From Paragordius varius (lineage: Eukaryota; Animalia; Nematomorpha), in NCBI GenBank assembly GCA_964247055.1, contig OZ176052.1, positions 14,355,446-14,419,445 on the forward strand: DNA of 64,000 nucleotides. Reading direction: 5' to 3'. Under the pieces are notes generated by a model. It had not been told where the DNA came from and ran no database searches. It worked only from the letters and a program-made list of their open reading frames with translations. Numbering within the stretch: the stretch's first letter is position 1; every line of letters starts with the position of its first letter. This document shows positions 42,001 to 64,000 of this stretch, in pieces. Position numbers and translations under genes: made by a program.

Positions 42001-45000
42001 CGTATAAAATAAATTTTTTAAATATTTAAAAAATTCATAAAAATTACATTTATACTCCGATCTCGAAAATATTTGGGGTGATGATGGAACTACCATAGGG
42101 CTACCCAAAAAAAATTATAGTGACATCACCTGATCAAATTTGGATTTTAGGTAGCCATTTTTATTTTTAAAATCGTATAAAATAAATTTTTTAAATATTT
42201 AAAAAATTCATAAAAATTACATTTATAGTCCGATCCCCAAAATATTTGGGGTGATGATGGAACTACCATAGGGCTACCCAAAAAAAATTATGGTGACATC
42301 ACCTGATCAAATTTGGATTTTAGGTAGCCATTTTTATTTTTAAAATCGTATAAAATAAATTTTTTAAATATTTAAAAAATTCATAAAAATTACATTTATA
42401 GTCCGATCCCCAAAATATTTGGGGTGATGATGGAACTACCATAGGGCTACCCAAAAAATATTATGGTGACATCACCTGATCAAATTTGGATTTTAGGTAG
42501 CCATTTTTATTTTTAAAATCGTATAAAATAAATTTTTTAAATATTGAAAAAATTCAAAAAAATTACATTTATACTCCGATCTCGAAAATATTTGGGGTGA
42601 TGATGGAACTACCATAGGGCTACCCAAAAAAAATTATGGCGACATCACCTGATCAAATTTGGATTTTAGGTAGCCATTTTTATTTTTAAAATCGTATAAA
42701 ATAAATTTTTTAAATGTTTAAAAAATTCATAAAAATTACATTTATAGTCCGATCCCCAAAATATTTGGGGTGATGATGGAATTACCATAGGGCTACCCAA
42801 AAAAAATTATGGTGACATCACCTGATCAAATTTGGATTTTAGGTAGCCATTTTGATTTTTAAAATCGTATAAAATATATTTTTTAAATATTTAAAAAATT
42901 CATAAAAATTACATTTATACTCCGATCTCGAAAATATTTGGGGTGATGATGGAACTACCATAGGGCTACCCAAAAAAAATTATAGTGACATCACCTGATC
43001 AAATTTGGATTTTAGGTAACCATTTTTATTTTTAATATCGTATAAAATAAATTTTTTAAATATTTAAAAAATTCATAAAAATTACATTTATAGTCCGATC
43101 CCCAAAATATTTGGGGTGATGATGGAACTACCATAGGGCTACCCAAAAAAAATTATAGTGACATCACCTGATCAAATTTGGATTTTAGGTAGCCATTTTT
43201 ATTTTTAAAATCGTATAAAATAAATTTTTTAAATATTTAAAAAATTCATAAAAATTACATTTATAGTCCGATCCCCAAAATATTTGGGGTGATGATGGAA
43301 CTACCATAGGGCTACCCAAAAAAAATTATGGTGACATCACCTGATCAAATTTGGATTTTAGGTAGCCATTTTTATTTTTAAAATCGTATAAAATAAATTT
43401 TTTAAATATTTAAAAAATTCATAAAAATTACATTTATACTCCGATCTCGAAAATATTTGGGGTGATGATGGAACTACCATAGGGCTACCCAAAAAAAATT
43501 ATGGTGACATCACCTGATCAAATTTGGATTTTAGGTAGCCATTTTTATTTTTAAAATTGTATAAAATCAATTTTTTAAATATTTAAAAAATTCATAAAAG
43601 TTACATTTATAGTCCGATCCCCAAAATATTTGGGGTGATGATGGAACTACCATAGGGCTACCCAAAAAAAATTATAGTGACATCACCTGATCAAATTTGG
43701 ATTTTAGGTAGCCATTTTTATTTTTAAAATCGTATAAAATAAATTTTTTAAATATTTAAAAAATTCATAAAAATTACATTTATAGTCCGATCCCCAAAAT
43801 ATTTGGGGTGATGATGGAACAACCATAGGGCTACGCAAAAAAAATTATGGCGACATCACCTGATCAAATTTGGATTTTAGGTAGCCATTTTTATTTTTAA
43901 TATCGTATAAAATAAATTTTTTAAATATTTAAAAAATTCATAAAAATTACATTTATAGTCCGATCCCCAAAATATTTGGGGTGATGATGGAACTACCATA
44001 GGGCTACCCAAAAAAAATTATAGTGACATCACCTGATCAAATTTGGATTTTAGGTAGCCATTTTTATTTTTAAAATCGTATAAAATAAATTTTTTAAATA
44101 TTTAAAAAATTCATAAAAATTACATTTATAGTCCGATCCCCAAAATATTTGGGGTGATGATGGAACAACCATAGGGCTACGCAAAAAAAATTATGGCGAC
44201 ATCACCTGATCAAATTTGGATTTTAGGTAGCCATTTTTATTTTTAAAATCGTATAAAATAAATTTTTTAAATATTGAAAAAATACAAAAAAATTACATTT
44301 ATACTCCGATCTCGAAAATATTTGGGGTGATGATGGAACTACCATAGGGCTACCCAAAAAAAATTATGGCGACATCACCTGATCAAATTTGGATTTTAGG
44401 TAGCCATTTTTATTTTTAAAATCGTATAAAATAAATTTTTTAAATGTTTAAAAAATTCATAAAAATTACATTTATAGTCCGATCCCCAAAATATTTGGGG
44501 TGATGATGGAATTACCATAGGGCTACCCAAAAAAAATTATGGTGACATCACCTGATCAAATTTGGATTTTAGGTAGCCATTTTTATTTTTAAAATCGTAT
44601 AAAATATATTTTTTAAATATTTAAAAAATTCATAAAAATTACATTTATACTCCGATCTCGAAAATATTTGGGGTGATGATGGAACTACCCTAGGGCTACC
44701 CAAAAAAAATTATAGTGACATCACCTGATCAAATTTGGATTTTAGGTAACCATTTTTATTTTTAATATCGTATAAAATAAATTTTTTAAATATTTAAAAA
44801 ATTCATAAAAATTACATTTATAGTCCGATCCCCAAAATATTTGGGGTGATGATGGAATTACCATAGGGCTACCCAAAAAAAATTATGGTGACATCACCTG
44901 ATCAAATTTGGATTTTAGGTAGCCATTTTTATTTTTAAAATCGTATAAAATATATTTTTTAAATATTTAAAAAATTCATAAAAATTACATTTATACTCCG

Positions 45001-48000
45001 ATCTCGAAAATATTTGGGGTGATGATGGAACTACCCTAGGGCTACCCAAAAAAAATTATAGTGACATCACCTGATCAAATTTGGATTTTAGGTAACCATT
45101 TTTATTTTTAATATCGTATAAAATAAATTTTTTAAATATTTAAAAAATTCATAAAAATTACATTTATAGTCCGATCCCCAAAATATTTGGGGTGATGATG
45201 GAACTACCATAGGGCTACCCAAAAAAAATTATAGTGACATCACCTGATCAAATTTGGATTTTAGGTAGCCATTTTTATTTTTAAAATCGTATAAAATAAA
45301 TTTTTTAAATATTTAAAAAATTCATAAAAATTACATTTATAGTCCGATCCTCAAAATATTTGGGGTGATGATGGAACTACCATAGGGCTACCCAAAAAAA
45401 ATTATGGTGACATCACCTGATCAAATTTGGATTTTAGGTAGCCATTTTTATTTTTAAAATCGTATAAAATAAATTTTTTAAATATTTAAAAAATTCATAA
45501 AAATTACATTTATAGTCCGATCCCCAAAATATTTGGGGTGATGATGGAACTACCATAGGGCTACCCAAAAAAAATTATGGTGACATCACCTGATCAAATT
45601 TGGATTTTAGGTAGCCATTTTTATTTTTAAAATCGTATAAAATAAATTTTTTAAATATTTAAAAAATTCATAAAAATTACATTTATAGTCCGATCCCCAA
45701 AATATTTGGGGTGATGATGGAACTACCATAGGGCTACCCAAAAAATATTATGGTGACATCACCTGATCAAATTTGGATTTTAGGTAGCCATTTTTATTTT
45801 TAAAATCGTATAAAATAAATTTTTTAAATATTGAAAAAATTCAAAAAAATTACATTTATACTCCGATCTCGAAAATATTTGGGGTGATGATGGAACTACC
45901 ATAGGGCTACCCAAAAAAAATTATGGCGACATCACCTGATCAAATTTGGATTTTAGGTAGCCATTTTTATTTTTAAAATCGTATAAAATAAATTTTTTAA
46001 ATGTTTAAAAAATTCATAAAAATTACATTTATAGTCCGATCCCCAAAATATTTGGGGTGATGATGGAATTACCATAGGGCTACCCAAAAAAAATTATGGT
46101 GACATCACCTGATCAAATTTGGATTTTAGGTAGCCATTTTGATTTTTAAAATCGTATAAAATATATTTTTTAAATATTTAAAAAATTCTTAAAAATTACA
46201 TTTATACTCCGATCTCGAAAATATTTGGGGTGATGATGGAACTACCATAGGGCTACCCAAAAAAAATTATAGTGACATCACCTGATCAAATTTGGATTTT
46301 AGGTAACCATTTTTATTTTTAATATCGTATAAAATAAATTTTTTAAATATTTAAAAAATTCATAAAAATTACATTTATAGTCCGATCCCCAAAATATTTG
46401 GGGTGATGATGGAACTACCATAGGGCTACCCAAAAAAAATTATAGTGACATCACCTGATCAAATTTGGATTTTAGGTAGCCATTTTTATTTTTAAAATCG
46501 TATAAAATAAATTTTTTAAATATTTAAAAAATTCATAAAAATTACATTTATAGTCCGATCCCCAAAATATTTGGGGTGATGATGGAACTACCATAGGGCT
46601 ACCCAAAAAAAATTATGGTGACATCACCTGATCAAATTTGGATTTTAGGTAGCCATTTTTATTTTTAAAATCGTATAAAATAAATTTTTTAAATATTTAA
46701 AAAATTCATAAAAATTACATTTATACTCCGATCTCGAAAATATTTGGGGTGATGATGGAACTACCATAGGGCTACCCAAAAAAAATTATGGTGACATCAC
46801 CTGATCAAATTTGGATTTTAGGTAGCCATTTTTATTTTTAAAATTGTATAAAATCAATTTTTTAAATATTTAAAAAATTCATAAAAGTTACATTTATAGT
46901 CCGATCCCGAAAATATTTGGGGTGATGATGGAACTACCATAGGGCTACCCAAAAAAAATTATAGTGACATCACCTGATCAAATTTGGATTTTAGGTATCC
47001 ATTTTTATTTTTAAAATCGTATAAAATAAATTTTTTAAATATTTAAAAAATTCATAAAAATTACATTTATAGTCCGATCCCCAAAATATTTGGGGTGGTG
47101 ATGGAACTACCATAGGGCTACCCAAAAAAAATTATGGTGACATCACCTGATCAAATTTGGATTTTAGGTAGCCATTTTTATTTTTAAAATCGTATAAAAT
47201 AAATTTTTTAAATATTTAAAAAATTCATAAAAATTACATTTATACTCCGATCTCGAAAATATTTGGGGTGATGATGGAACTACCATAGGGCTACGCAAAA
47301 AAAATTATGGTGACATCACCTGATCAAATTTGGATTTTAGGTAGCCATTTTTATTTTTAAAATCGTATAAAATAAATTTTTTAAATGTTTAAAAAATTCA
47401 TAAAAATTACATTTATAGTCCGATCCCCAAAATATTTGGGGTGATGATGGAATTACCATAGGGCTACCCAAAAAAAATTATGGTGACATCACCTGATCAA
47501 ATTTGGATTTTAGGTAGCCATTTTGATTTTTAAAATCGTATAAAATATATTTTTTAAATATTTAAAAAATTCATAAAAATTACATTTATACTCCGATCTC
47601 GAAAATATTTGGGGTGATGATGGAACTACCATAGGGCTACCCAAAAAAAATTATAGTGACATCACCTGATCAAATTTGGATTTTAGGTAACCATTTTTAT
47701 TTTTAATATCGTATAAAATAAATTTTTTAAATATTTAAAAAATTCATAAAAATTACATTTATAGTCCGATCCCCAAAATATTTGGGGTGATGATGGAACT
47801 ACCATAGGGCTACCCAAAAAAAATTATAGTGACATCACCTGATCAAATTTGGATTTTAGGTAGCCATTTTTATTTTTAAAATCGTATAAAATAAATTTTT
47901 TAAATATTTAAAAAATTCATAAAAATTACATTTATACTCCGATCTCGAAAATATTTGGGGTGATGATGGAACTACCATAGGGCTACCCAAAAAAAATTAT

Positions 48001-51000
48001 GGTGACATCACCTGATCAAATTTGGATTTTAGGTAGCCATTTTTATTTTTAAAATTGTATAAAATCAATTTTTTAAATATTTAAAAAATTCATAAAAGTT
48101 ACATTTATAGTCCGATCCCCAAAATATTTGGGGTGATGATGGAACTACCATAGGGCTACCCAAAAAAAATTATAGTGACATCACCTGATCAAATTTGGAT
48201 TTTAGGTAGCCATTTTTATTTTTAAAATCGTATAAAATAAATTTTTTAAATATTTAAAAAATTCATAAAAATTACATTTATAGTCCGATCCCCAAAATAT
48301 TTGGGGTGGTGATGGAACTACCATAGGGCTACCTAAAAAAAATTATGGTGACATCACCTGATCAAATTTGGATTTTAGGTAGCCATTTTTATTTTTAAAA
48401 CCGTATAAAATAAATTTTTTAAATATTTAAAAAATTCATAAAAATTACATTTATACTCCGATCTCGAAAATATTTGGGGTGATGATGGAACTACTATAGG
48501 GCTACGCAAAAAAAATTATGGTGGCATCACCTGATCAAATTTGTATTTTAGGTAGCCATTTTTATTTTTAAAATCGTATAAAATAAATTTTTTAAATGTT
48601 TAAAAAATTCATAAAAATTACATTTATAGTCCGATCCCCAAAATATTTGGGGTGATGATGGAATTACCATAGGGCTACCCAAAAAAAATTATGGTGACAT
48701 CACCTGATCAAATTTGGATTTTAGGTAGCCATTTTTATTTTTAAAATCGTATAAAATATATTTTTTAAATATTTAAAAAATTCATAAAAATTACATTTAT
48801 ACTCCGATCTCGAAAATATTTGGGGTGATGATGGAACTACCCTAGGGCTACCCAAAAAAAATTATAGTGACATCACCTGATCAAATTTGGATTTTAGGTA
48901 GCCATTTTGATTTTTAAAATCGTATAAAATATATTTTTTAAATATTTAAAAAATTCATAAAAATTACATTTATACTCCGATCTCGAAAATATTTGGGGTG
49001 ATGATGGAACTACCATAGGGCTACCCAAAAAAAATTATACATCACCTGATCAAATTTGGATTTTAGGTAACCATTTTTATTTTTAATATCGTATAAAATA
49101 AATTTTTTAAATATTTAAAAAATTCATAAAAATTACATTTATAGTCCGATCCCCAAAATATTTGGGGTGATGATGGAACTACCATAGGGCTACCCAAAAA
49201 AAATTATAGTGACATCACCTGATCAAATTTGGATTTTAGGTAGCCATTTTTATTTTTAAAATCGTATAAAATAAATTTTTTAAATATTTAAAAAATTCAT
49301 AAAAATTACATTTATAGTCCGATCCCCAAAATATTTGGGGTGATGATGGAACTACCATAGGGCTACCCAAAAAAAATTATGGTGACATCACCTGATCAAA
49401 TTTGGATTTTAGGTAGCCATTTTTATTTTTAAAATCGTATAAAATAAATTTTTTAAATATTTAAAAAATTCATAAAAATTACATTTATCCGATCTCGAAA
49501 ATATTTGGGGTGATGATGGAACTACCATAGGGCTACCCAAAAAAAATTATGGTGACATCACCTGATCAAATTTGGATTTTAGGTAGCCATTTTTATTTTT
49601 AAAATTGTATAAAATCAATTTTTTAAATATTTAAAAAATTCATAAAAGTTACATTTATAGTCCGATCCCCAAAATATTTGGGGTGATGATGGAACTACCA
49701 TAGGGCTACCCAAAAAAAATTATAGTGACATCACCTGATCAAATTTGGATTTTAGGTATCCATTTATATTTTTAAAATCGTATAAAATAAATTTTTTAAA
49801 TATTTAAAAAATTCATAAAAATTACATTTATAGTCCGATCCCCAAAATATTTGGGGTGGTGATGGAACTACCATAGGGCTACCCAAAAAAAATTATGGTG
49901 ACATCACCTGATCAAATTTGGATTTTAGGTAGCCATTTTTATTTTTAAAATCGTATAAAATAAATTTTTTAAATATTTAAAAAATTCATAAAAATTACAT
50001 TTATACTCCGATCTCGAAAGTATTTGGGGTGATGATGGAACTACCATAGGGCTACCCAAAAAAAATTATAGTGACATCACCTGATCAAATTTGGATTTTA
50101 GGTAGCCATTTTTATTTTTAAAATCGTATAAAATAAATTTTTTTAATATTTAAAAAATTCATAAAAATTACATTTATAGTCCGATCCCCAAAATATTTGG
50201 GGTGATGATGGAACTACCATAGGGCTACCCAAAAAATATTATGGTGACATCACCTGATCAAATTTGGATTTTAGGTAGCCATTTTTATTTTTAAAATCGT
50301 ATAAAATAAATTTTTTAAATATTTAAAAAATTCATAAAAATTACATTTATACTCCGATCTCGAAAATATTTGGGGTGATGATGGAACTACCATAGGGCTA
50401 CCCAAAAAAAATTATGGTGACATCACCTGATCAAATTTGGATTTTAGGTAGCCATTTTTATTTTTAAAATCGTATAAAATAAATTTTTTAAATGTTTAAA
50501 AAATTCATAAAAATTACATTTATAGTCCGATCCCCAAAATATTTGGGGTGATGATGGAATTACCATAGGGCTACCCAAAAAAAATTATGGTGACATCACC
50601 TGATCAAATTTGGATTTTAGGTAGCCATTTTGATTTTTAAAATCGTATAAAATATATTTTTTAAATATTTAAAAAATTCATAAAAATTACATTTATACTC
50701 CGATCTCGAAAATATTTGGGGTGATGATGGAACTACCATAGGGCTACCCAAAAAAAATTATAGTGACATCACCTGATCAAATTTGGATTTTAGGTAACCA
50801 TTTTTATTTTTAATATCGTATAAAATAAATTTTTTAAATATTTAAAAAATTCATAAAAATTACATTTATAGTCCGATCCCCAAAATATTTGGGGTGATGA
50901 TGGAACTACCATAGGGCTACCCAAAAAAAATTATAGTGACATCACCTGATCAAATTTGGATTTTAGGTAGCCATTTTTATTTTTAAAATCGTATAAAATA

Positions 51001-54000
51001 AATTTTTTAAATATTTAAAAAATTCATAAAAATTACATTTATACTCCGATCTCGAAAATATTTGGGGTGATGATGGAACTACCATAGGGCTACCCAAAAA
51101 AAATTATGGTGACATCACCTGATCAAATTTGGATTTTAGGTAGCCATTTTTATTTTTAAAATTGTATAAAATCAATTTTTTAAATATTTAAAAAATTCAT
51201 AAAAGTTACATTTATAGTCCGATCCCCAAAATATTTGGGGTGATGATGGAACTACCATAGGGCTACCCAAAAAAAATTATAGTGACATCACCTGATCAAA
51301 TTTAGATTTTAGGTAGCCATTTTTATTTTTAAAATCGTATAAAATAAATTTTTTAAATATTTAAAAAATTCATAAAAATTACATTTATAGTCCGATCCCC
51401 AAAATATTTAGGGTGGTGATGGAACTACCATAGGGCTACCCAAAAAAAATTATGGTGACATCACCTGATCAAATTTGGATTTTAGGTAGCCATTTTTATT
51501 TTTAAAATTGTATAAAATAAATTTTTTAAATATTTAAAAAATTCATAAAAATTACATTTATACTCCGATCTCGAAAGTATTTGGGGTGATGATGGAACTA
51601 CCATAGGGCTACCCAAAAAAAATTATAGTGACATCACCTGATCAAATTTGGATTTTAGGTAGCCATTTTTATTTTTAAAATCGTATAAAATAAATTTTTT
51701 AAATATTTAAAAAATTCATAAAAATTACATTTATAGTCCGATCCCCAAAATATTTGGGGTGATGATGGAACTACCATAGGGCTACCCAAAAAAAATTATA
51801 GTGACATCACCTGATCAAATTTGGATTTTAGGTAGCCATTTTTATTTTTAAAATCGTATAAAATAAATTTTTTAAATATTTAAAAAATTCATAAAAATTA
51901 CATTTATACTCCAATCTCGAAAATATTTGGGGTGATGATGGAACTACCATAGGGCTACCCAAAAAAAATTATGGTGACATCACCTGATCAAATTTGGATT
52001 TTAGGTAGCCATTTTTATTTTTAAAATTGTATAAAATCAATTTTTTAAATATTTAAAAAATTCATAAAAGTTACATTTATAGTCCGATCCCCAAAATATT
52101 TGGGGTGATGATGGAACTACCATAGGGCTACCCAAAAAAAATTATAGTGACATCACCTGATCAAATTTGGATTTTAGGTAGCCATTTTTATTTTTAAAAT
52201 CGTATAAAATAAATTTTTTAAATATTTAAAAAATTCATAAAAATTACATTTATAGTCCGATCCCCAAAATATTTGGGGTGGTGATGGAACTACCATAGGG
52301 CTACCCAAAAAAAATTATGGTGACATCACCTGATCAAATTTGGATTTTAGGTAGCCATTTTTATTTTTAAAATTGTATAAAATAAATTTTTTAAATATTT
52401 AAAAAATTCATAAAAATTACATTTATACTCCGATCTCGAAAGTATTTGGGGTGATGATGGAACTACCATAGGGCTACCCAAAAAAAATTATAGTGACATC
52501 ACCTGATCAAATTTGGATTTTAGGTAGCCATTTTTATTTTTAAAATCGTATAAAATAAATTTTTTTAATATTTAAAAAATTCATAAAAATTACATTTATA
52601 GTCCGATCCCCAAAATATTTGGGGTGATGATGGAACTACCATAGGGCTACCCAAAAAATATTATGGTGACATCACCTGATCAAATTTGGATTTTAGGTAG
52701 CCATTTTTATTTTTAAAATCGTATAAAATAAATTTTTTAAATATTTAAAAAATTCATAAAAATTACATTTATACTCCGATCTCGAAAATATTTGGGGTGA
52801 TGATGGAACTACTATAGGGCTACGCAAAAAAAATTATGGTGACATCACCTGATCAAATTTGTATTTTAGGTAGCCATTTTTATTTTTAAAATCGTATAAA
52901 ATAAATTTTTTAAATGTTTAAAAAATTCATAAAAATTACATTTATAGTCCGATCCCCAAAATATTTGGGGTGATGATGGAATTACCATAGGGCTACCCAA
53001 AAAAAATTATGGTGACATCACCTGATCAAATTTGGATTTTAGGTAGCCATTTTTATTTTTAAAATCGTATAAAATATATTTTTTAAATATTTAAAAAATT
53101 CATAAAAATTACATTTATACTCCGATCTCGAAAATATTTGGGGTGATGATGGAACTACCCTAGGGCTACCCAAAAAAAATTATAGTGACATCACCTGATC
53201 AAATTTGGATTTTAGGTAACCATTTTTATTTTTAATATCGTATAAAATAAATTTTTTAAATATTTAAAAAATTCATAAAAACTACATTTATAGTCCGATC
53301 CCCAAAATATTTGGGGTGATGATGGAACTACCATAGGGCTACCCAAAAAAAATTATAGTGACATCACCTGATCAAATTTGGATTTTAGGTAGCCATTTTT
53401 ATTTTTAAAATCGTATAAAATAAATTTTTTAAATATTTAAAAAATTCATAAAAATTACATTTATAGTCCGATCCCCAAAATATTTGGGGTGATGATGGAA
53501 CTACCATAGGGCTACCCAAAAAAAATTATGGTGACATCACCTGATCAAATTTGGATTTTAGGTAGCCATTTTTATTTTAAAATCGTATAAAATAAATTTT
53601 TTAAATATTTAAAAAATTCAAAAAAATTACATTTATACTCCGATCTCGACAATATTTGGGGTGATGATGGAACTACCATAGGGCTACCCAAAAAAAATTA
53701 TGGTGACATCACCTGATCAAATTTGGATTTTAGGTAGCCATTTTTTATAAAATCTAAATTTTTTAAATATTTAAAAAATTCAAAAAAATTACATTTATAC
53801 TCCGATCTCGAAAATATTTGGGGTGATGATGGAACTACCATAGGGCTACCAAAAAAAATTATGGTGACATCACCTGATCAAATTTGGGATTTAGGTAGCC
53901 ATTTTTATTTTTAAAATCGTAATTTTGTCAATATTTATAAAATTCATAAAAATAACATTTATATTCCGATCTCAAAAATAATTGGGGTGATGATGGAACT

Positions 54001-54012
54001 ACTAAAGGGCTA
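1..54012. repeat. 173-bp tandem satellite array, ~312 head-to-tail monomers, extending beyond the left edge of the window
   Basis: GATGATGGAA recurs at 71, 244 and 417 (period 173) and continues without interruption to ~54000. Hand count of one monomer gives 45/173 G+C. The last, truncated monomer ends at ...ACTAAAGGGCTA (54012). Confidence 0.99.
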
Positions 54013-54017
54013 TTTAC

Positions 54018-55570
54018 TGCATTCCCCCTATCCGTCGTCTATCATTTTTCGGCATTCCTCCTATCCGTCGTCGGTCATTTTTTAGCAATCATCCTATCCG
54101 TCGTCAGTCTGCTTCTGTCCCTCACTTTCTAGCCGTCGTCAGTTGGTTTTCTGCATTTCCCCTATCCGTCGTCAGTCATTTTTCAACAATCATCCTATCC
54201 GTCGTCAGTCATTTTTCGGAATTCCTCCTATCCGTCGTCAGTCATTTTTTAGCAATCATTCTATCCGTCGTCAGTCTGTTTCTGTCCGTCATTTTGTAGC
54301 CGTCGTAAGTTGGTTTTTTGCATTCCCCCTATCCGTCGTCAGTCATTTTTCAACAATTATCCTATCCGTCGTCAGTCATTTTTTGGCATTCAACCTATCC
54401 GTCGTCAGTCTGTTTTTGTCCGTCATTTTCTAGCCGTCGTCAGTTGGTTTTCCTGCATTCCCCTATCCGTCGTCATTTTTTGGCATTCCTCCTATCCGTC
54501 GTCAGTCTGCTTTAGTCCGTTATTTTCTAGCCGTCGTCAGTTGGTTTTCCTGCATTCCCTTATCCGTCGTCAGACATTTTTCAACAATCATCCTATCCGT
54601 CGTCAGTCATTTTTTAGCAATCATCCTATCCGTCGTCAGTCTGTTTCTGTCCCTCACTTTCTAGCCGTCGTCAGTTGGTTTTCTGCATTTCCCCTATCCG
54701 TCGTCAGTCATTTTTCAACAATCATCCTATCCGTCGTCAGTCATTTTTCGGCATTCCTCCTATCCGTCGTCAGTCATTTTTTAGCAATCATCCTATCCGT
54801 CGTCAGTCTGTTTCTGTCCCTCACTTTCTAGCCGTCGTCAGTTGGTTTTCTGCATTTCCCCTATCCGTCGTCAGTCATTTTTCAACAATCATCCTATCCG
54901 TCGTTAGTCATTTTTCGGCATTCCTCCTATCCGTCGTCAGTCATTTTTAAGTAATCATCCTATCCGTCGTCAGTCTGTTTCTGTCTCTCACTTTCTAGCC
55001 GTCGTCAGTTGGTTTTCTGCATTTCCCCTATCCGTCGTCAGTCATTTTTCAACAATCATCCTATCCGTCGTCAGTCATTTTTCGGAATTCCTCCTATCCG
55101 TCGTCAGTCATTTTTTAGCAATCATCCTATCCGTCGCCAGTCTGTTTCTGCCCCTCACTTTCAAGCCGTCGTCAGTTTGTTTTCTGCATTTCCCCTATCC
55201 GTCGTCAGTCATTTTTCAACAATCATCCTATCCGTCGTCAGTCATTTTTTAGCAATCATCCTATTCGTCGTCAGTCTGTTTCTGCCCCTCACTTTCTAGC
55301 CGTCGTCAGTTGGTTTTCTGCATTTCCCCTATCCGTCGTCAGTCATTTTTCGGCATTCCGTCGTCAGTCATTTTTTAGCAATCATTCTATCCGTCGTCAC
55401 TCTGTTTTTGTCCGTCACTTTCTAGCCGTCGTCAGTTGGTTTTTGCATTCCCCCTATCCGTCGTCAGTGATTTTTCGGTATTTCCCTTACCGTCGTCAGT
55501 CATTTTTGAACAATCATCCTATGTGTCGTCAGTCTCTTCCTAGTCGCCAATTCGTTTGCATTACTCCTCT
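54018..55570 (-). repeat. CpG-rich ~33-bp minisatellite (core TATCCGTCGTCAGT) with 167-bp pentameric higher-order repeat, left copy (~46 units)
   Basis: Core recurs every 33-35 bp. Five unit types cycle (33+33+33+33+35 = 167). The marker CTCACTTT falls at 54653, 54820, 54987 and 55154. Confidence 0.97.
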
Positions 55571-55924
55571 CGAGAGATATGAGGAAGTATTTTAAAAAAT
55601 TGTTAGAAGATATTAAAAAGCATATTTAAACATTTCCACGGGAATTCACTTTTAATCACACTATTTTGTAGGGCATTAATATTTTCCAGACAAATCACAA
55701 AATTAACAATTACACACCCAAATCAATATAAACACTAATTTCCAAATATACAAATGTTTAAGCTTTTTTATAAATGTTTTTAATACAAGTTTTCAATTAT
55801 TATTTAATGGTATCTAAAAACTGAAAATATGTTTTTTTCTGTGTTTTATTGTAATAATTAATATGATAACCTAGTATGAATCTTAGCACTCCTTAATAAT
55901 TATGATTATTTAAAATATCTATAA

Positions 55925-55931
55925 AATAATG
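55925..55931. other. Target-site duplication AATAATG, left copy
   Basis: An identical 7-mer lies at 56788-56794. The two copies bracket exactly the sequence missing from the right inverted-repeat arm. Confidence 0.7.
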
Positions 55932-55979
55932 ATGTAGGAATTGTCGTAAAATAACGCAAATAATAAAAATATAATTTTT

Positions 55980-56018
55980 TAATTCTCAAATTTTTGCCAT
56001 AGCATCATCAGGAGATTA
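55980..56018 (-). ncRNA. Degenerate minimal type I hammerhead ribozyme motif of the PLE pLTR, probably inactive
   Basis: Minus strand reads TAATCTC-CTGATGA-T-GC-TATG-GC-AAAAA-TTT-GAGAATTA. Stem I is TAATCTC/GAGA(A)TTA, the CUGAUGA core is intact and stem II is GC/GC. The GAAA box reads AAAA and stem III is rudimentary. Confidence 0.62.
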
Positions 56019-56323
56019 GTTAAGAAAAATATATATAATATAAGAAAATAATAATTAAAAAAATGAACAAAATCATGGTTGATGTTATTATATAGGAAAA
56101 AAATCACAAACCGTTAGTGAACAAAAGAAAGAAAGATCACTTAGAAAACCGTTGTGATGTAAAAAATCAAATGTGTATTTTTTTTCACAAAAATTAATTG
56201 TAAATAAATGTATAAGCGTAAAATTATTAAAATTTAAGTAATATCTACACTATAAAATGGTTTGTCATTAAAAATTCGATAATTTTTTATAAATGATTTA
56301 GTTTCAGAATTTATAGCTTTCCT

Positions 56324-56785
56324 TTATTTACGGCGATTAAGCAAACCATCTTCTGCGCTCTGTATAAAGAGGGCTTTTTTTGTTATACTTGCGCTGTGTT
56401 TTCTTTCAACGAAAACGTCAATTCTGTTTGAGCATTCATGGTTGTTATCCACGCAATGCAGAAACATGGCCGAACTTTTGCTTTTTTAATGTTCCTTATA
56501 TCTTACCTTTAAGTTTGGCTTTGACTGGCCTATGTAAATTGCCGGGCAGTTCTTGCATCTCAACTTGTATATCGTGTTTTCCATTTCCACTTCCTTAGAC
56601 TTTAACATTTTTAAAACGTTTGATGTTGGTTTATAAACTACTTTTATGTTACACAACCATCTGGATTTGCCGAAATAAGAGATAGATTTCTTTTTAAAAT
56701 TTTGTTTACTGCTGTTGTAATCCATTCTTTTTGATAGCCTTGTTGCTAAATACTGTACAATTTCATTTGTTTGGTATATCTGCAT
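56324..56785 (-). pseudogene. PLE polyprotein C-terminus: RT-EN linker and GIY-YIG endonuclease, with an in-frame stop at 56486-56488
   Basis: Translation includes NIKVVYKPTSNVLKML (PLE linker-like) and TIYKLRCKNCPAIYIGQSKPNLKVRYKEH (GIY...YIG...R..EH with CxxC). After the TAA the same frame continues KSKSSAMFLHCVDNNHECSNRIDVFVERKHSASITKKALFIQSAEDGLLNRRK*, matching the SA..H...NH...N tail typical of PLE endonucleases. No RT domain is present. Confidence 0.88.
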
Positions 56786-56787
56786 TT

Positions 56788-56794
56788 AATAATG
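56788..56794. other. Target-site duplication AATAATG, right copy
   Basis: Matches 55925-55931. Inverted-repeat homology to the right arm resumes here. Confidence 0.7.
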
Positions 56795-58787
56795 TTTGTT
56801 TAGTTATTTTAACTTACGCTTTGTTTGTGTGTTTTCATTGTTTGCAATATTGATATTTTTTATTTGGGCCATCAATGTTTTACTATGTTTTTTAGTACAT
56901 TTCAAACTAATCATCCTTTTTTTTGTTATCGTTTAAAACGGTACTTTTGCAGCCGATAACATGTTAAAATAAAAACAATTATATTTTTTTATAATCATGT
57001 TTTCATAGTTTGGTATTTTAAAACATATCAAAAAAAATATATTTTGGTGTTATATTCTGCCCACTTTTTCTTCCTTAAAAAACTCTTATATGATGGTGAT
57101 ATGTCAGAAACTTTGAATGAAGTTTTGCCTCAAATATTAAAAATTGTTTGATGTTAATTTTAAGTTGTTTAGATAGGGTTTTTTAGGCTTATTCAAACCA
57201 ATCAAGGCAAATAGAAACTAAATTATAGGCCAATTAAGATTGTAAATATATGTTAAAATTATTAATTTTAAGGCTGAGTTATCATTTTTTACAAAATAAA
57301 GATCAATCAAAAGGATTATAAAAAACAAAGTTATATTGAGAGATCTATTTAAAATCAAAAAAATGTCAGTGGATTAACGAGTTTAGTAAAGTAAAAATCT
57401 AAACAACAAATATTCATTAATTAAAATAAATGCAAAGAGTGTCAATAACTTTTAAATTTAAATTAGCGTAAAAAGATATTTTTCAAAATTCTAACATTTA
57501 TTAAATTTATGCTATAAACATATTCTAATATTGTTTTTTAAGCTACTTTTTTAACTTAAGTTGTTAACTTCAAAAATATTTGCAAAAAATATTATTATTT
57601 ATAAAAAGCAAAAAATGATATGTTTAATCATTTATATATTCGTATTAATAACATAACTTTTATAGTTTTTAAAATAGAAAAAATTCCAAACATGGTTAAA
57701 ATTTATATAACCTTGATTTTCTATATTTACAAAAAAATAATTTTTATATTTTATATTTTTTAATATAAATGTCAATTAATTAATGCATAGAAATAATTAC
57801 ACGCTTAAGTTAACATTTAAATTAAAAAAATATCATAATTTATTTATTTGTAAATTGAAATATATAATATTATTGTTAACAATATTTTTTAATAATATAT
57901 TATTTATTTTGAGCACAATCTGTAAAAATATATATACGTCAAATTTTTTTTATTTAACATTGTTTTTAACAATATAGTTCTCGTTTTTGTTAATTTAAAC
58001 TGTTAATAATTATTTGTTTTGCGTTTTGCCTGTTTTATCTAGATATTTCATTAAAAAAAATAAATAATCATTTATTATTTTTAAATAAAAAATGTTTGTT
58101 AAAAACAAATACTATAATTTTTTAATAATTACTCTCAAAAAGTAATTAAATATCAAAATGATTATATTGATGTATATCATTATCTGATAAAATATTTATA
58201 GCAATAGAAGAGCTTATTCAATTCATGATCTACATATTTTCGATTTATTTAACAGGCTTTATACGTTTTATCCTACTTTTTTTTCCATTTTGTGAGTTAT
58301 CAAAATCATTAAATTAACGTAACTAATAATATAATTTAATTATTTCAGTAAACCTAATAGAAAATGCTATTTAATTAATACACATAATTATTTATTAATT
58401 TTAGGTCACACTTTACAACTAAATAGAATTATTATAGAAATAAATAAATATGGTTTGTACTCCATACCAACTATAATAAAAATATTTTAACCGCAAACAC
58501 GTGGTGCGTTCGCTAAGAACTAATTTATATAAAAAATTTTAGTGAACTATGTTTTAATAAAGTTAAATTCATGTACATTATTTATAAAGTGACAACATAT
58601 TACAATAGCATATGTTAGTCCATAAAAAATAAAAAAATATCTTTTTTAAAATTAGATAAGAATATTATTTTTTTAAAAAAACATGTTTCTGATCTTTATA
58701 AACCAAAAATGTTTTATGCTATACAAAAAAATGTTGTTTTATTTAGGTAAATATTTTAGCAATTAAAATATAAAAACATATCTTATA

Positions 58788-58881
58788 AATGGCACTATCA
58801 TAGATGTTTTACCATAAAGAAAGTATTATGAAACAATGGCACTATCAAAGATGTTTTACCATAAAGAAAGTATTATGAAAC
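58788..58881. repeat. 47-bp tandem duplication, 2 copies with 1 mismatch
   Basis: AATGGCACTATCA(T/A)AGATGTTTTACCATAAAGAAAGTATTATGAAAC at 58788 and 58835. Confidence 0.95.
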
Positions 58882-59222
58882 AAAATAATTTTTTATAATT
58901 AAACTACAGTTTAATACAAATTCTAATTTAGTTTTAGATGCGATTATAATTTAAAATAATAAATTTACTAAAAGAATTATTTTAATAATAATTAATTTTT
59001 GTATTCGTTAAACCTAGATAAAAGAATAGTTTTATGTTAACGCTTAGTCTTGTTTTAGGTCGATTAGATATTATTTTATCACAATTTATAATCAATATAA
59101 TTGATATAATTTTTATTAACAACATCTTGCACATAAATTATTATTATTTTTATTTATTTAATTAGAAAAAATGATCAATACCAGATTTATTCATTATAAT
59201 AAACAATATACAAATTTTTTTA

Positions 59223-59646
59223 TAATACTTTAATTGTAACACGTAATTACTGTGTTCTAATTCAAATATATAATAGGATATAAAAGACTTACATTAAAAA
59301 CATAATAATAAATTCCAAATTCTCAATAATTTGATTATATATAATTCACGCTGTAGGTGAATGCGAAATATTTATCGGTTTTATGTAACAACCTATTAAT
59401 AAAATTGATATAAAAATATTTATTTTTTTCAATATTAAAAAAAATAATCACTACCATATTTATTTATTATAATAATTATAGTAATATGCAAAATTTAGTT
59501 TAATACTTTTATTGTAACACGTAATTTTACTCCAATATAAATAAATAATTTTATATAACATAGTCTTTTATTAAAAACATATTATAAAATGTAAAATTTA
59601 AATTTAAAATATTTAAATTACATGCTGTAGTTGAATGCAAAATATT
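59223..59646. repeat. Degenerate direct repeat with ~276-bp period, 2 copies
   Basis: ATTGTAACACGTAATT at 59233 and 59511; GCTGTAG(G/T)TGAATGC at 59350 and 59624. Confidence 0.8.
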
Positions 59647-59949
59647 AATTAAGAAAGTTTATTAAATGATATTTAAAAAAACTGACTTTAATGGCTTGAA
59701 ATTATCATTATTTATGCAATTCAACAAATATTAAATTTCAAACATATTTCTATAAGATCAAACTTTTTTATTATTCTTTTCTGTTCATTTGCCTTTTGGA
59801 AAGACTTATTAATAAATTTTGTTAAATTACATATTTGTACGTTACTGATAAAGATTAATCACGCATCAAATTTTAGCGGCAATTAAACAATCTATAGCTT
59901 AATACAATAACAAACTATGATGTTATAAAAAATATAAATAACAAAATTA

Positions 59950-61300
59950 TAACATAAAAAACGCATAAGACAAAATAAGTAAACATCGGTAGAGACAAAT
60001 ATATAAACACATATATAGCCTAATGCATAATGACCACGTATAATAAACTATGAAAATTACATTCCTTTATCTTTAACATGTTATAAAGCTGCGTACGTAC
60101 TGTTTAAAACAATGATGAGAAATAAACGTTTTAAAATGTTGTAAAAAACCTGGTAAAACATTCATGTTTCTAATGCAAAATATCAATTGTGCAAACAAAG
60201 TCAACAGACAAAAAACGCATTAGAAATATAACGTAAGCATCAGGATACTATTTTAAAATATCATAATTATTTAGATGAGCTAAGATTCTTACTAGAATAT
60301 TATATTAATTATTTAAAAAGCCTGTACCATTAAACACAGAAAAATATATATTTTTATACTTTTGATAGAAACAGATTAGTCATGCATCAATTAAGCGTAA
60401 AATATAAAAACACATATATAGTGTAATGCATAATACCCCAAACAGTTAAACTAAAAAAATCACATAATTGTCAACAAAAATAGAATAATTATCTTTTGTA
60501 TTTAACATGTTATCCAGCTGCGAAAGTTCCAATTAAAACTATTATCAAAAAATAAAAATTGCTTTAAAATGTAAAAAAACATTAATGGTCCAATTTAAAT
60601 ATCGATGTTGCAAAAAAAATCAACACACAAATAACGCAGAAGATAAAATAAAAACATTAATTCACTGATATATCGAAATTAGGGGCGGCAAGATTCATAC
60701 TAGCTTAATATCCCAATCACATAATTGTCAACAAAAATAGAATAATTATCTTTCGTATTTATGATGCCAGCTGCCAAACTTATAACCCAAAAGGTAAAAC
60801 AAGTAAAGATGAATGCACTAATATATCAAAATATTATTTATATGCGGCAAGATTCATACTAGATTATTATAATTATTAATAAATAGCCTGTATAATAAAA
60901 CACAGAAAAAAAAATATATTTTTATAATTTTGATACTATTAAAATTAATCATACTCACATCTATAGCGTACATATTGGATCAAAATACCAAACTATGAAA
61001 ACATGATTATAAAAAAATTATAATAGTTTTTATCTCTAACATGTTATCGGCTGCAAAAGTACCGTTTTAAACGATAACGAGAAAAGTATGATTAGTTTAT
61101 GTACTAAAAAACATAGTAAAACATTGATGGCCCTAATAAAAAATATCAATATTGCTAACAATTTAAACACACAAATAAAGCGTAAGTTAAAATAACTAAA
61201 CAAACATTATATTGATATTTGTAAAAATCATAATTATTAAGGAGTGCTAAGATTTATACTAGGTTATCATATTAATTATTACAATAAAACACATAAAAAA
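59950..61300. repeat. Old, diverged tandem array with ~400-500-bp unit (~3 copies plus a partial internal duplication)
   Basis: Recurring motifs: TAACATGTTAT...GCTGC near 60074, 60503 and 61037; AGATT(C/T)(A/T)TACTAG near 60283, 60691, 60850 and 61250; AAACACATATATAG near 60005 and 60408. An exact 39-bp copy AATCACATAATTGTCAACAAAAATAGAATAATTATCTTT lies at 60458 and 60715. Confidence 0.78.
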
Positions 61301-62176
61301 GCATATTTTCAGTTTTTAGATACCATTAAATAATAATTGAAAACTCGTATTAAAAACATTTATTAAAAAGCTTAAACAATTGTATAGTTGGAAATTCTGT
61401 TTATATTAATTTGGGTGTGTAATTGTTAATTTTGTGATTTGTCTGGAAAATATTAATGCCCTACAAAATAGTGTGATTAAAAGTGAATTCCGGTGGAAAT
61501 GTTTAAATATGTTTTTTTATTATCTTCTAACGATTTTTTAAAATACTTCCTCATATCTCTCGTTAGAAGGAATGCAAACAAACTGGCGACTGCTTGGAAG
61601 AGACTGACCACACATAGGATGATTGTTCAAAATGACTGACGACGGATAGGGGAATGCCGAAAAATCACTGACGACGGATAGTATGATTGCTGAAAAATGA
61701 CTGACGACGGATAAGAGGAATGCTTAAAACAAACTGACGACGGATAAGAACAGATTGACGACAGATTGGATGATTGTTGAAAAATGACTGACGACGGATA
61801 GGGAGAATGCAGGAAAACCAACTGACGACGGATAGAAAAGGACGGACAAAAACAGACTGACGACGGATAGGAGGAATGCCGAAAAATGACTGACGACGGA
61901 TAGGATGATTGTTGAAAAATGACTGACGACGGATAGGGGGAATGCAAAAAACCAACTGACGACGGCTAGAAAGTGACGGACAAAAACAGACTGACGACGG
62001 ATAGAATGATTGCTAAAAAATGACTGACGACGAATAGGAGGAATGCCGAAAAATGACTGACGACGGATAGGGGGAATGCAAACCAACTGACGACGGCTAG
62101 AAAGTCACGGACAAAAACAGACTGACGACGGATAGAATGATTGCTGAAAAAATATGCTGAAAACGAACTGACGACG
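60982..62176 (+). repeat. Right arm of the long inverted repeat, lacking the PLE and capped by the telomere
   Basis: Reverse-complement alignment to the left arm by eye, roughly 85-90% identity in the non-tandem part. It is contiguous across the site where the left arm carries the PLE. Confidence 0.95.
61565..62176 (+). repeat. Telomere-adjacent ~33-bp minisatellite (core ACTGACGACGGATAG), right copy (~18 units)
   Basis: Reverse complement of the left array. It shares the diagnostic inner-edge variant units (AAATCACTGACG; CACACATAGGATGATTGTTC). Confidence 0.97.
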
Positions 62177-62179
62177 CCG

Positions 62180-63415
62180 TTAGCGTTAGGGTTAGGGTTA
62201 GGGTTAGGGTTAGGGTTAGGGTTAGGGTTAGGGTTAGGGTTAGGGTTAGGGTTAGGGTTAGGGTTAGGGTTAGGGTTAGGGTTAGGGTTAGGGTTAGGGT
62301 TAGGGTTAGGGTTAGGGTTAGGGTTAGGGTTAGGGTTAGGGTTAGGGTTAGGGTTAGGGTTAGGGTTAGGGTTAGGGTTAGGGTTAGGATTAGGGTTAGG
62401 GTTAGGGTTAGGGTTAGGGTTAGGGTTAGGGTTAGGGTTAGGGTTAGGGTTAGGGTTAGGGTTAGGGTTAGGGTTAGGGTTAGGGTTAGGGTTAGGGTTA
62501 GGGTTAGGGTTAGGGTTAGGGTTAGGGTTAGGGTTAGGGTTAGGGTTAGGGTTAGGGTTAGGGTTAGGGTTAGGGTTAGGGTTAGGGTTAGGGTTAGGGT
62601 TAGGGTTAGGGTTAGGGTTAGGGTTAGGGTTAGGGTTAGGGTTAGGGTTAGGGTTAGGGTTAGGGTTAGGGTTAGGGTTAGGGTTAGGGTTAGGGTTAGG
62701 GTTAGGGTTAGGGTTAGGGTTAGGGTTAGGGTTAGGGTTAGGGTTAGGGTTAGGGTTAGGGTTAGGGTTAGGGTTAGGGTTAGGGTTAGGGTTAGGGTTA
62801 GGGTTAGGGTTAGGGTTAGGGTTAGGGTTAGGGTTAGGGTTAGGGTTAGGGTTAGGGTTAGGGTTAGGGTTAGGGTTAGGGTTAGGGTTAGGGTTAGGGT
62901 TAGGGTTAGGGTTAGGGTTAGGGTTAGGGTTAGGGTTAGGGTTAGGGTTAGGGTTAGGGTTAGGGTTAGGGTTAGGGTTAGGGTTAGGGTTAGGGTTAGG
63001 GTTAGGGTTAGGGTTAGGGTTAGGGTTAGGGTTAGGGTTAGGGTTAGGGTTAGGGTTAGGGTTAGGGTTAGGGTTAGGGTTAGGGTTAGGGTTAGGGTTA
63101 GGGTTAGGGTTAGGGTTAGGGTTAGGGTTAGGGTTAGGGTTAGGGTTAGGGTTAGGGTTAGGGTTAGGGTTAGGGTTAGGGTTAGGGTTAGGGTTAGGGT
63201 TAGGGTTAGGGTTAGGGTTAGGGTTAGGGTTAGGGTTAGGGTTAGGGTTAGGGTTAGGGTTAGGGTTAGGGTTAGGGTTAGGGTTAGGGTTAGGGTTAGG
63301 GTTAGGGTTAGGGTTAGGGTTAGGGTTAGGGTTAGGGTTAGGGTTAGGGTTAGGGTTAGGGTTAGGGTTAGGGTTAGGGTTAGGGTTAGGGTTAGGGTTA
63401 GGGTTAGGGTTAGGG
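62180..63415 (+). repeat. Telomeric repeat tract (TTAGGG)n
   Basis: One TTAGCG at 62180-62185, then 205 in-phase hexamers at 62186-63415, all TTAGGG except one TTAGGA at 62384-62389. The G-rich strand runs 5'->3' toward the window end, as expected at a right chromosome end. Confidence 0.99.
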
Positions 63416-63419
63416 TAGG

Positions 63420-63451
<32 letters not shown>

Positions 63452-64000
63452 ATGGGTAGGGTTAGGGTTAGGGTTAGGGTTAGGGGTAGGGTTAGGGTAG
63501 GGTTAGGGTAGGGTAGGTAGGGTGGGTGGGTAGGGTGAGGGTAGGGGGTGAGGGTGGGGGTGGGGGGGGGGAGGGGTGGGGGGAGGGTGAGGGTAGGGGA
63601 GGGGAGGGGGGGAGGGGAGGGGGGTGGGGTGGGGAGGGTGGGGGAGGGTGAGGGGGAGGGGGTGGGGGAGGGGGAGGGGGAGGGGGAGGGTGTGGGGGAG
63701 GGGGAGGGTGAGGGAGGGGGAGGGTGGGGAGGGGGAGGGGGAGGGGGAGGGGCAGGGTGAGGGGGAGGGGGTGGGGGTGGGGGTGGGGAGGGGGGTGGGG
63801 TAGGGGGAGGGTGAGGGGGTGGGGGAGGGGGAGGGGGAGGGGGTGGGGTGGGGGAGGGGGAGGGGAGGGGTGGGGGTGGGGGTGGGGGTGGGGGAGGGGG
63901 AGGGGGAGGGGGAGGGGGTGGGGGAGGGGGTGGGGGGTGGGGAGGGGGTGGGGGAGGGGTAGGGGTGGGGGATGGGGAGGGGGGGGTGGGGGTGCGTGTC
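63416..64000 (+). other. Progressively degenerate telomeric / G-rich tail, likely a low-quality contig end
   Basis: TTAGGG decays through TAGGG and GGTAGG into GGGGGA, GGGGGT and GGGTGA, often keeping a 6-bp period. Confidence 0.7.

Follow-up and report, generated by a model that had tools for sequence, protein, structure and literature searches.

A chromosome-end-specific inverted-repeat block in Paragordius varius, probably an old fold-back duplication spread between subtelomeres

The DNA between satellite and telomere at the right end of a 14.4-Mb telomere-to-telomere contig (C3) of the AT-rich Paragordius varius genome forms an inverted-repeat block of ~8 kb. This block is probably a chromosome-end-specific subtelomeric duplicon, in which a fold-back-type inverted duplication was healed by a telomere and then spread by recombination, and not a mobile element. 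We examined the terminal 64,000 nucleotides of the contig (the window) and confirmed the block at 54018-62176, where the original prediction had placed it. That prediction offered two accounts, a foldback-type element recruited as a chromosome cap or an inverted duplication of the terminal subtelomere. The second is favored by the restriction of all copies to chromosome ends, by their common flanks and junctions, and by the separation of left and right arms into different clades.

Read outward from the centromere side, the order is satellite, 33-bp array, inner arm, spacer, inverted inner arm, inverted array and (TTAGGG)n. The 173-bp satellite lies proximal to the block on the plus strand at 1..54012 (TRF period 173, 95% matches, 52 copies in the scanned part) and is uniform in composition from the first base of the window. 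It is followed by the left, or proximal, 33-bp array at 54013..55534 on the minus strand (45.8 copies by TRF) and by the left inner arm, whose two parts (a, 55535..55942, and b, 56789..57019) both pair with the right inner arm and are separated by a 5'-truncated Penelope-like retroelement fragment (55943..56788, minus strand). A single-copy AT-rich spacer, or loop (57020..60981), leads to the right, or distal, inner arm at 60982..61560, which is uninterrupted. The right 33-bp array (~61561..62176, plus strand, ~16 copies by TRF) is the reverse complement of the left one, and the telomere, (TTAGGG)n on the plus strand, occupies 62177..63514 (TRF, 223 copies at 62179-63514, 98% matches). TRF and self-alignment bear out the predicted pair of inverted arms, each with an outer 33-bp tandem domain and an inner AT-rich domain, as well as their placement, with one arm adjoining the 173-bp satellite, which runs up to 54012, and the other capped by (TTAGGG)n from ~62177. 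The arms are an inverted pair as described, but they are not symmetrical, because the left arm alone carries an 846-bp insertion and the arrays are unequal, with 44 versus 16 core motifs. The tandem-repeat scan and a reading of the end sequence also reveal a degenerate G-rich tail of GGGGAG/GGGGTG-like units at 63515..64000 on the plus strand. Other contig ends finish in similar degenerate runs, of the TTAAAG type.

Leaving aside its insertion, the left inner arm measures 0.64 kb, and the right inner arm measures 0.58 kb. Positions 55516-55942 pair with 61620-61191 at 91.2% over 431 columns (E 6e-144), and positions 56789-57019 pair with 61210-60982 at 93.1% over 233 columns (E 7e-77). Part b of the left arm stops cleanly at ...GGTATTTT, and the arm ends are sharp; the arms are ~5% diverged, at which level microhomology at the spacer edges is unreadable. 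The spacer, predicted to be non-coding and ~4 kb long, measures 3,962 bp with 19.8% GC and indeed contains neither an ORF longer than 64 aa nor an Rfam match at E<=0.1. In its right third lie degenerate direct repeats of ~460 bp that are related to the inner arm, such that 59923-60367 resembles 60864-61322 at 66%.

The left array is 1.5 kb in length, C/T-rich on the plus strand, CpG-rich and 45% GC, with 44 CGTCGT cores spaced mostly at 33 bp, a CpG observed/expected ratio of 1.5, and higher-order periods of 134 and 167 bp detected by TRF. The right array is inverted and shorter (0.6 kb, 16 cores, the same ratio of 1.5), and is G/A-rich on the strand that continues into the telomere G-strand. 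Inverted matches between the two arrays reach 277 nt at 94%. The outer edges of the block are therefore long terminal inverted repeats made of tandem subrepeats, an architecture of the foldback type. With 44-45% GC and 6.8 CpG per 100 bp, the arrays stand out from surroundings of 20-26% GC, and their lengths differ 2-3 fold among the block-bearing ends. CpG depletion is seen nowhere in this region, so the label 'CpG island' carries little meaning here.

The 846-bp insertion that interrupts the left arm consists of the end of an ORF with a GIY-YIG nuclease motif and a 3' UTR, and is flanked by an imperfect target duplication (ATATC...ATAATG). These features, together with its genomic relatives, mark it as a 5'-truncated Penelope-like retroelement fragment, an assignment for which the Pfam GIY-YIG match of the ORF at 56486-56785 (minus strand) is marginal (E 3e-4, 21.4 bits versus a cut-off of 22.6). 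Genome-wide, the fragment has 94 six-frame matches, many of them arranged as head-to-head (inverted) pairs and with ORFs of up to 788 aa, and its 3' part belongs to a dispersed repeat with copies at 74-86% identity. One full-length relative is similar to reverse-transcriptase/GIY-YIG/HTH clusters in the Atlas; Pfam gave no match for its ORF. The same fragment sits in the left arm at all seven ends that carry the block.

Inner arms, arrays and spacer occur at exactly seven places in the 110.6-Mb assembly, and all of them are telomere-adjacent. Eleven large contigs (C1-C11) make up 109.3 of the 110.6 Mb and have telomere repeats at both ends. The block is found at one end each of six of these (C1, C2, C3, C4, C5 and C7) and on a 24-kb orphan contig (C28), which leaves 16 of the 22 large-contig telomeres without it. 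Neither block nor satellite was found at the other ends of the six contigs, and in genome-wide searches neither arms nor arrays nor spacer matched anything on C6 or C8-C11. At the two C6 ends the non-telomeric sequence that was read, a few hundred bases, likewise showed no satellite; the end pieces of C8-C11 are almost entirely telomere. All seven copies pass into the telomere at one and the same base (...GAACTGACGACGC(C/G)G|TTAGGG), six of the seven share the satellite junction, and the spacer is oriented identically relative to the telomere in every copy. Satellite polarity relative to the telomere is also the same at all seven ends. A whole-assembly search of the arms had been proposed as a means to distinguish a transposon, with interstitial copies bearing target-site duplications, from a dedicated subtelomeric module confined to chromosome ends; it returned copies at chromosome ends only. 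The shared junctions, the common Penelope-like insertion and the uniform orientation speak for a single origin of all copies. The block thus has the attributes of a shared subtelomeric duplicon, being telomere-adjacent only, present on several chromosomes in fixed polarity, and highly similar between copies that fall into subfamilies.

In a maximum-likelihood tree of the 14 inner arms, the left arms form one clade and the right arms another (support 100/99), and both clades repeat the same split into group A (C3, C4, C7 and the orphan C28) and group B (C1, C2 and C5). Left and right arms are 93-95% identical overall and 94-95% identical inside one block, and like arms are 96-98% alike from A to B and 98.4-99.8% alike within a group. 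Because left and right arms fall into separate clades, the inversion is older than the spread, and arm-to-arm conversion has not occurred since. The original prediction that arm-to-arm recombination could invert the spacer finds no counterpart in the seven assembled copies, given their uniform spacer orientation and the 94-95% similarity of own-block arms versus 97-99.8% for like arms at different ends. When both arms and the right half of the spacer, which is homologous between the groups, are divided into 200-bp windows, substitution-only identity between groups A and B is mostly 95-98%, with one window at 92.7%. Divergence that is this even across arms and spacer gives no hint that the arms are constrained. 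Between the two groups, ~1.9 kb in the middle of the block has been replaced or rearranged.

We propose that the history of the block began with a fold-back-type inverted duplication at an end where satellite, 33-bp array, inner sequence and today's spacer were already in place. A terminal break and resection may have allowed the end to fold back on itself and make an inverted copy of the proximal 1-2 kb, with the ~4-kb loop left as single-copy spacer. The inverted copy would then have been broken within its 33-bp array and healed by telomerase, giving rise to the single array/telomere junction of today. The inverted arms around a 3,962-bp single-copy spacer, and a shorter distal array joined directly to (TTAGGG)n, are consistent with such an event. 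The Penelope-like fragment inserted into the proximal arm next, after which the finished unit of distal satellite, block and telomere junction reached one end of at least six chromosomes, likely through crossing-over or break-induced replication inside the 173-bp satellite, whose polarity is the same at each of these ends. The unit subsequently divided into subfamilies A and B. The data show the anatomy and distribution of the block, the identity of its junctions, the sequence of events and the absence of homogenisation between arms; the fold-back origin, telomerase healing and the recombinational route are inferred. No unduplicated, progenitor-type end was recovered in this genome by searches for arms, arrays and spacer. 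In its present state the block behaves like telomere-adjacent DNA that is inherited passively, with no arm conversion, no spacer flipping, and equal divergence of arms and spacer.

This architecture resembles human inv-dup-del and yeast palindromic rearrangements, which also have two inverted copies around a single-copy spacer of kilobase size. Among human fold-back inverted duplications that have been sequenced, spacer length spans 766-70,466 bp with a median of 3,428 bp (PMC3907307), so that the 3.96 kb seen here lies near the human median of 3.4 kb. As in fold-back inverted duplications beside terminal deletions, the distal copy is shortened and telomere-capped. Unlike the human and yeast cases, however, the arms here are only ~1.2-2.2 kb long, are old (5-6% diverged) and fixed, and have been copied onto several non-homologous chromosome ends. 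In that last respect the block is like yeast X/Y' elements, Plasmodium TAREs and human subtelomeric duplicons, which are likewise end-specific blocks exchanged between ends and likewise have short, GC-richer tandem repeats beside the telomere, although they share no sequence relation with it. It differs from subtelomeric elements in general in that the whole subtelomere is one inverted-repeat unit wedged between telomere and satellite.

Long inverted arms with tandem repeats in their outer domain, and a middle that varies, are shared with Drosophila FB and sea-urchin TU elements, and together with the AT-rich inner domain they would suit a foldback-type transposon that either targets chromosome ends or was recruited there. 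We regard such an origin as very unlikely. Arms, arrays and spacer have no interstitial copies anywhere in the 110.6 Mb, whereas FB and TU are dispersed; the block edges lack target-site duplications, no transposase ORF is present, and the block did not pass the mobility tests. Moreover, the copies have flanks and breakpoints in common (telomere in seven of seven, satellite in six of seven), whereas independent insertions would differ, and a left arm is more similar to the left arms at other ends than to the right arm of its own block, the opposite of what homogenised terminal repeats of a master element would give. The predicted recruitment of a foldback element as a cap is accordingly not supported, the satellite and telomere context being the same throughout. 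A foldback chimeric long read built into the contig end is an exceedingly improbable source of the structure. Long-read end artefacts do exist in this assembly, in the form of G-rich and TTAAAG tails, and the ~0.5-kb G-rich tail at 63515-64000 itself most likely arose as an error of reading or base-calling where the contig ends, outside the biology. Nonetheless, the arms differ by 5-6% and by the 846-bp insertion, the telomere lies outside the arms and not between them, and the structure was assembled independently at seven ends, with private substitutions and indels and two subfamilies.

The CpG-rich arrays raise the question of function. In humans, the promoters of TERRA consist of CpG-rich 61-29-37-bp tandem repeats beside the telomere. 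By analogy, the block might be a telomere-adjacent module kept by selection, in which the outward-facing arrays would bind proteins or act as promoters, with telomeric, TERRA-like transcription starting from the distal array and satellite transcription from the proximal one; alternatively, read-through of the arms would yield a hairpin RNA for heterochromatic silencing. The base composition of the arrays within AT-rich surroundings, the position of the distal array beside the telomere in G-strand polarity, and the invariant telomere junction would all suit this idea, yet we consider it improbable. Extra conservation is absent from arms, arrays and spacer alike, A-B identity being even along the block; array copy number differs 2-3 fold between ends; retroelement insertions and the 1.9-kb replacement are tolerated; and 16 of 22 large-contig telomeres do without the block, in a region where CpG is not depleted anywhere. 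Less probable still is a non-neutral end module specific to satellite-bearing, possibly telocentric chromosomes, in which the arrays would start transcription into telomere and satellite while hairpin RNA from the arms seeds heterochromatin over both. The conserved telomere junction and the CpG-rich arrays could nevertheless reflect function besides shared descent.

It is possible, though we hold it only tentatively and think it rather unlikely, that the block is a miniature short arm of telocentric chromosomes, with the 173-bp satellite as the centromere repeat and the block as the telomere-to-centromere transition. Mouse chromosome ends run from telomere through a conserved L1 fragment and a TLC array to the minor satellite (PMC12597820); many mouse chromosomes likewise have, at one end, a short shared block that separates the telomere from a very large satellite (PMC12597820, citing Kalitsis 2006). 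In both species the block contains a conserved truncated retroelement (Penelope-like, by our assignment, in this genome) and tandem repeats, and has been homogenised among non-homologous chromosomes; the mouse block lacks the inverted-arm architecture, and here the block is on only six of 11 chromosomes and the 173-bp satellite is a candidate centromere repeat. Each of the six telomere-to-telomere contigs has exactly one satellite-plus-block end, and the satellite is extensive (at least 0.94 Mb on C3 and at least 3.2 Mb genome-wide). On the other hand, five of the 11 contigs (C6 and C8-C11) have no block, and an arrangement of one block per chromosome on six chromosomes would arise by chance alone with p ~0.07. 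A telocentric setting bears on where the block sits and would agree with the inverted duplication and spread that we favor for its origin.

This is a fully resolved case, from a poorly studied invertebrate lineage, of a whole subtelomere that appears to be one fossil rearrangement, a fold-back inverted duplication probably homogenised later across non-homologous ends via terminal satellites. It reveals no new kind of element or mechanism. The resulting chromosome-end map comprises eleven contigs with both telomeres, six of which carry megabase satellite and block at one end only, and the block and satellite are ready probes for the question of telocentric chromosomes.

The satellite extends inward for at least 0.94 Mb on C3, with identical dimers found back to C3:13,470,378, and the genome as a whole contains at least 18,500 monomers (at least 3.2 Mb). 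When the flanking 9 kb of satellite is compared in register, similarity within groups (96-98% for C3-C4 and 92-98% for C2-C5, with 91.7% in the innermost kilobase) somewhat exceeds that between groups (mostly 93-96%, falling to 87% in the innermost kilobase), a difference in favor of spread through the satellite. The within-group in-register similarity of the satellite is only slightly above background.

The window reaches the right end of contig C3 (positions 14355446–14419445 of 14,419,445), and its sequence, which is not human, is 26% GC. A homogeneous 173-bp satellite, unrelated to alpha satellite, fills positions 1–54012. At 54013 the composition shifts to 45% GC with a strong C/T skew, which marks the start of a left 33-bp tandem array that runs to near 55534 with 45.8 copies; higher-order periodicity appears at 134 and 167 bp. 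Its G/A-rich mirror image on the right (approximately 61561–62176) continues directly into a telomere of (TTAGGG)223 at 62179–63514. Inside the arrays are located unique, AT-rich inner arms, which pair as 55516–55942 with 61620–61191 (91.2%, E = 6e-144) and as 56789–57019 with 61210–60982 (93.1%, E = 7e-77). The arm edges are sharp on both sides, at ...GGTATTTT, and the spacer between the arms measures 3,962 bp at 19.8% GC. The original prediction, which described inverted arms with outer 33-bp arrays and AT-rich inner domains around a noncoding spacer of ~4 kb, is correct in this layout and in its coordinates. It needs amendment in two respects: the left arm is interrupted by an insertion of 846 bp, and the two arrays differ in size, with 44 core motifs on the left versus 16 on the right.

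The only coding content of the block is a retroelement fragment. No ORF longer than 64 aa is found in the spacer, and ORFs inside the 33-bp array were rejected as genes because they are repeat artefacts. A search for structured RNA genes gave no Rfam match in the block at E≤0.1, and a search of the block for a telomerase-RNA-like template returned just single chance CCCTAA and TTAGGG hexamers.

The retroelement fragment corresponds to the insertion in the left arm. Inner-arm segments that are contiguous in the right arm are split in the left arm by 55943–56788, and the target (ATATC...ATAATG) is repeated imperfectly at the flanks of the insert. The minus strand of the insert carries a 99-aa ORF, the end of which matches the Pfam GIY-YIG family marginally (E = 3e-4; 21.4 bits, with a cut-off of 22.6). 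This ORF has 94 six-frame relatives genome-wide, many of them arranged in head-to-head pairs and some contained in ORFs that reach 788 aa, and in its 3′ half the insert consists of a dispersed repeat with 74–86% identity. Penelope-like elements are abundant. A full-length relative, an intact Penelope-like ORF of 787 aa located on the minus strand of another stretch (L045:549–2909), has a Protein Atlas score of 0.98 to reverse-transcriptase/GIY-YIG/HTH clusters, despite the lack of any Pfam match at E≤0.01. We read the 846-bp insert as a 5′-truncated Penelope-like retroelement, and as a passenger that lies outside the inverted-repeat design.

When the inner arm, the spacer and the array are used as queries against all 110.6 Mb of the assembly, the same seven places are returned, namely the right ends of C3 and C4, the left ends of C1, C2, C5 and C7, and a 23.9-kb orphan contig, C28. 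With the exception of retroelement fragments, the 110.6 Mb hold no interstitial copies of arm, spacer or array; all seven places are telomere-adjacent. The eleven large contigs C1–C11 (15.2 down to 1.87 Mb) account for 109.3 of the 110.6 Mb and carry (TTAGGG)n at 22 of 22 ends, and the assembly is effectively telomere-to-telomere for 11 chromosomes. The block is present at exactly one end of C1, C2, C3, C4, C5 and C7. At the opposite ends of these six contigs, neither block nor satellite occurs in the 0.8–1.5 kb read beside the telomere, the piece from the left end of C3 being all telomere. No block was found on C6 or C8–C11 in the whole-assembly searches with arm, spacer and array.

The seven copies all follow one order: satellite, C-strand array, a first inner arm carrying the shared insertion, spacer, second inner arm, G-strand array and telomere, over block lengths of 7.5–8.6 kb. 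Satellite polarity relative to the telomere and spacer orientation are each identical in seven of seven cases, and the junction between array and telomere falls at the same base throughout. The junction between satellite and array is the same in six copies, with a different breakpoint in C28. Array copy number varies across ends (19–54 on the left, 8–17 on the right).

When the 14 inner arms are placed in a maximum-likelihood tree, the seven left arms form one clade and the seven right arms form another (support 100/99). Both clades show the same subgroups, with C3, C4, C7 and C28 in group A and C1, C2 and C5 in group B. Left and right arms share 93–95% identity, whereas like arms share 96–98% between groups and 98.4–99.8% within a group. 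From the separate left and right clades, each with the same subgroups, and from the identities, we conclude that the inverted duplication occurred a single time, prior to the spread of the block. Insertion of the retroelement followed the duplication, as just one of the arms has it, and preceded the spread, as all copies share it. A further conclusion is that the paired arms within a block have since then not homogenised each other. An invertible spacer or arm-to-arm conversion as an ongoing process, as had been proposed in the form of spacer inversion by arm-to-arm recombination, is therefore rejected, given that orientation is uniform and that left and right arms form distinct clades.

To measure constraint, we aligned the inter-array part of all seven copies and calculated substitution-only identity in 200-bp windows. 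Between groups A and B this identity is mostly 95–98% per window (one window, 92.7%) in either arm and along the right-hand half of the spacer, and the groups are rearranged or non-homologous at 56,970–58,900. No selective constraint on the arms is seen in this seven-copy alignment, as they are no more constrained than the loop. The spacer segment limited to group-A blocks includes a short palindromic, MITE-like dispersed repeat (58612–58724) that, at the same loci elsewhere, matches on both strands. Group-B blocks carry in their middle, within this rearranged part, a second Penelope-like GIY-YIG fragment with open frames of up to 221 aa (C1:7510–7719; C5:6700–6924; C2:7709–7849), oriented as the first insert with its 3′ end facing the satellite. 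At the right end of C4 (fetched stretches L032/L033), ∼350 bp of the right inner arm are tandemly duplicated beside the distal array (∼17811–18162 in the oriented copy).

The original prediction offered two alternatives, a foldback-type element recruited as a chromosome cap or an inverted duplication of the terminal subtelomere, and the comparison of all seven copies decides between them in favor of the duplication. A foldback transposon is rejected on the absence of interstitial copies, the identical flanks at every copy and the arm phylogeny. The inverted structure might instead have been an artefact of assembly, but this is excluded by the 5–6% divergence of the arms, by the insertion in one arm only and by the existence of seven independent variant copies. 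It is possible that the block is a functional module, in which telomeric and satellite transcripts would start from promoters formed by the arrays, and hairpin RNA would come from the arms. Positive support for such a module is confined to the composition of the arrays (44–45% GC, CpG o/e of 1.5) and the invariant telomere junction.

Two inverted copies flanking a few kilobases of single-copy spacer, the distal one shorter and capped by a telomere, are the trace left by a fold-back inverted duplication that was subsequently broken and healed by a telomere. Spacers of sequenced human fold-back inverted duplications range from 766 to 70,466 bp (median 3,428 bp; PMC3907307), against 3,962 bp here. 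We infer that such a duplication at one satellite-bearing end would have created the block, with breakage and then telomere healing of the distal copy, and that recombination or break-induced replication, acting in satellite of the same polarity, may then have carried the unit with its junctions to other ends. The block is a genuine, clearly delimited feature. The best interpretation is that of a chromosome-end-specific subtelomeric block common to several ends, whose internal inverted structure is a fossil of the fold-back rearrangement. When the flanking 9 kb of satellite are compared in register, C3 and C4, which belong to the same group, are 96–98% identical versus mostly 93–96% between groups. 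This slightly greater similarity within groups lends weak support to exchange points inside the satellite.

For the context of the block, the closest described situation is the mouse telocentric end, where the minor satellite is separated from the telomere by a conserved truncated L1 and a 6–12 kb TLC array that different chromosomes have in common (PMC12597820). That six chromosomes carry one block each (chance ∼0.07) is suggestive of a centromeric 173-bp satellite, but weakly so, with five chromosomes lacking the block. Identical satellite dimers extend back 0.94 Mb from the block on C3, and a 20-mer taken from the monomer is counted at least 18,537 times genome-wide, equivalent to at least 3.2 Mb. 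On C1, ∼320 kb from the left telomere, satellite at 319827–337355 has a polarity opposite to that of the block-adjacent array, and therefore at least one orientation switch exists within the terminal satellite domain. A separate simple satellite, not placed on chromosomes, makes up the first 2.5 kb sampled from C12 (43.7 kb) and C13 (82.3 kb), which are nearly pure (ATTTT)n with 1% GC (L057, L058).

Beyond the telomere, the window finishes in a degenerate G-rich tail of GGGGAG and GGGGTG runs (63515–64000, the contig tip). Telomere tracts at the right ends of C8–C11 (L060–L063) decay into similarly degenerate TTAAAG runs at their tips, and because of this likeness the tips, including that of the window, look like long-read base-calling or read-end artefacts. 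Two block-free ends, C1 right (L046) and C4 left (L049), have in common a different subtelomere with the same telomere junction. They are 96% identical over ∼510 bp and then 99.3% over 2.85 kb, mostly telomere repeat, so the genome has a second family of duplicated ends.
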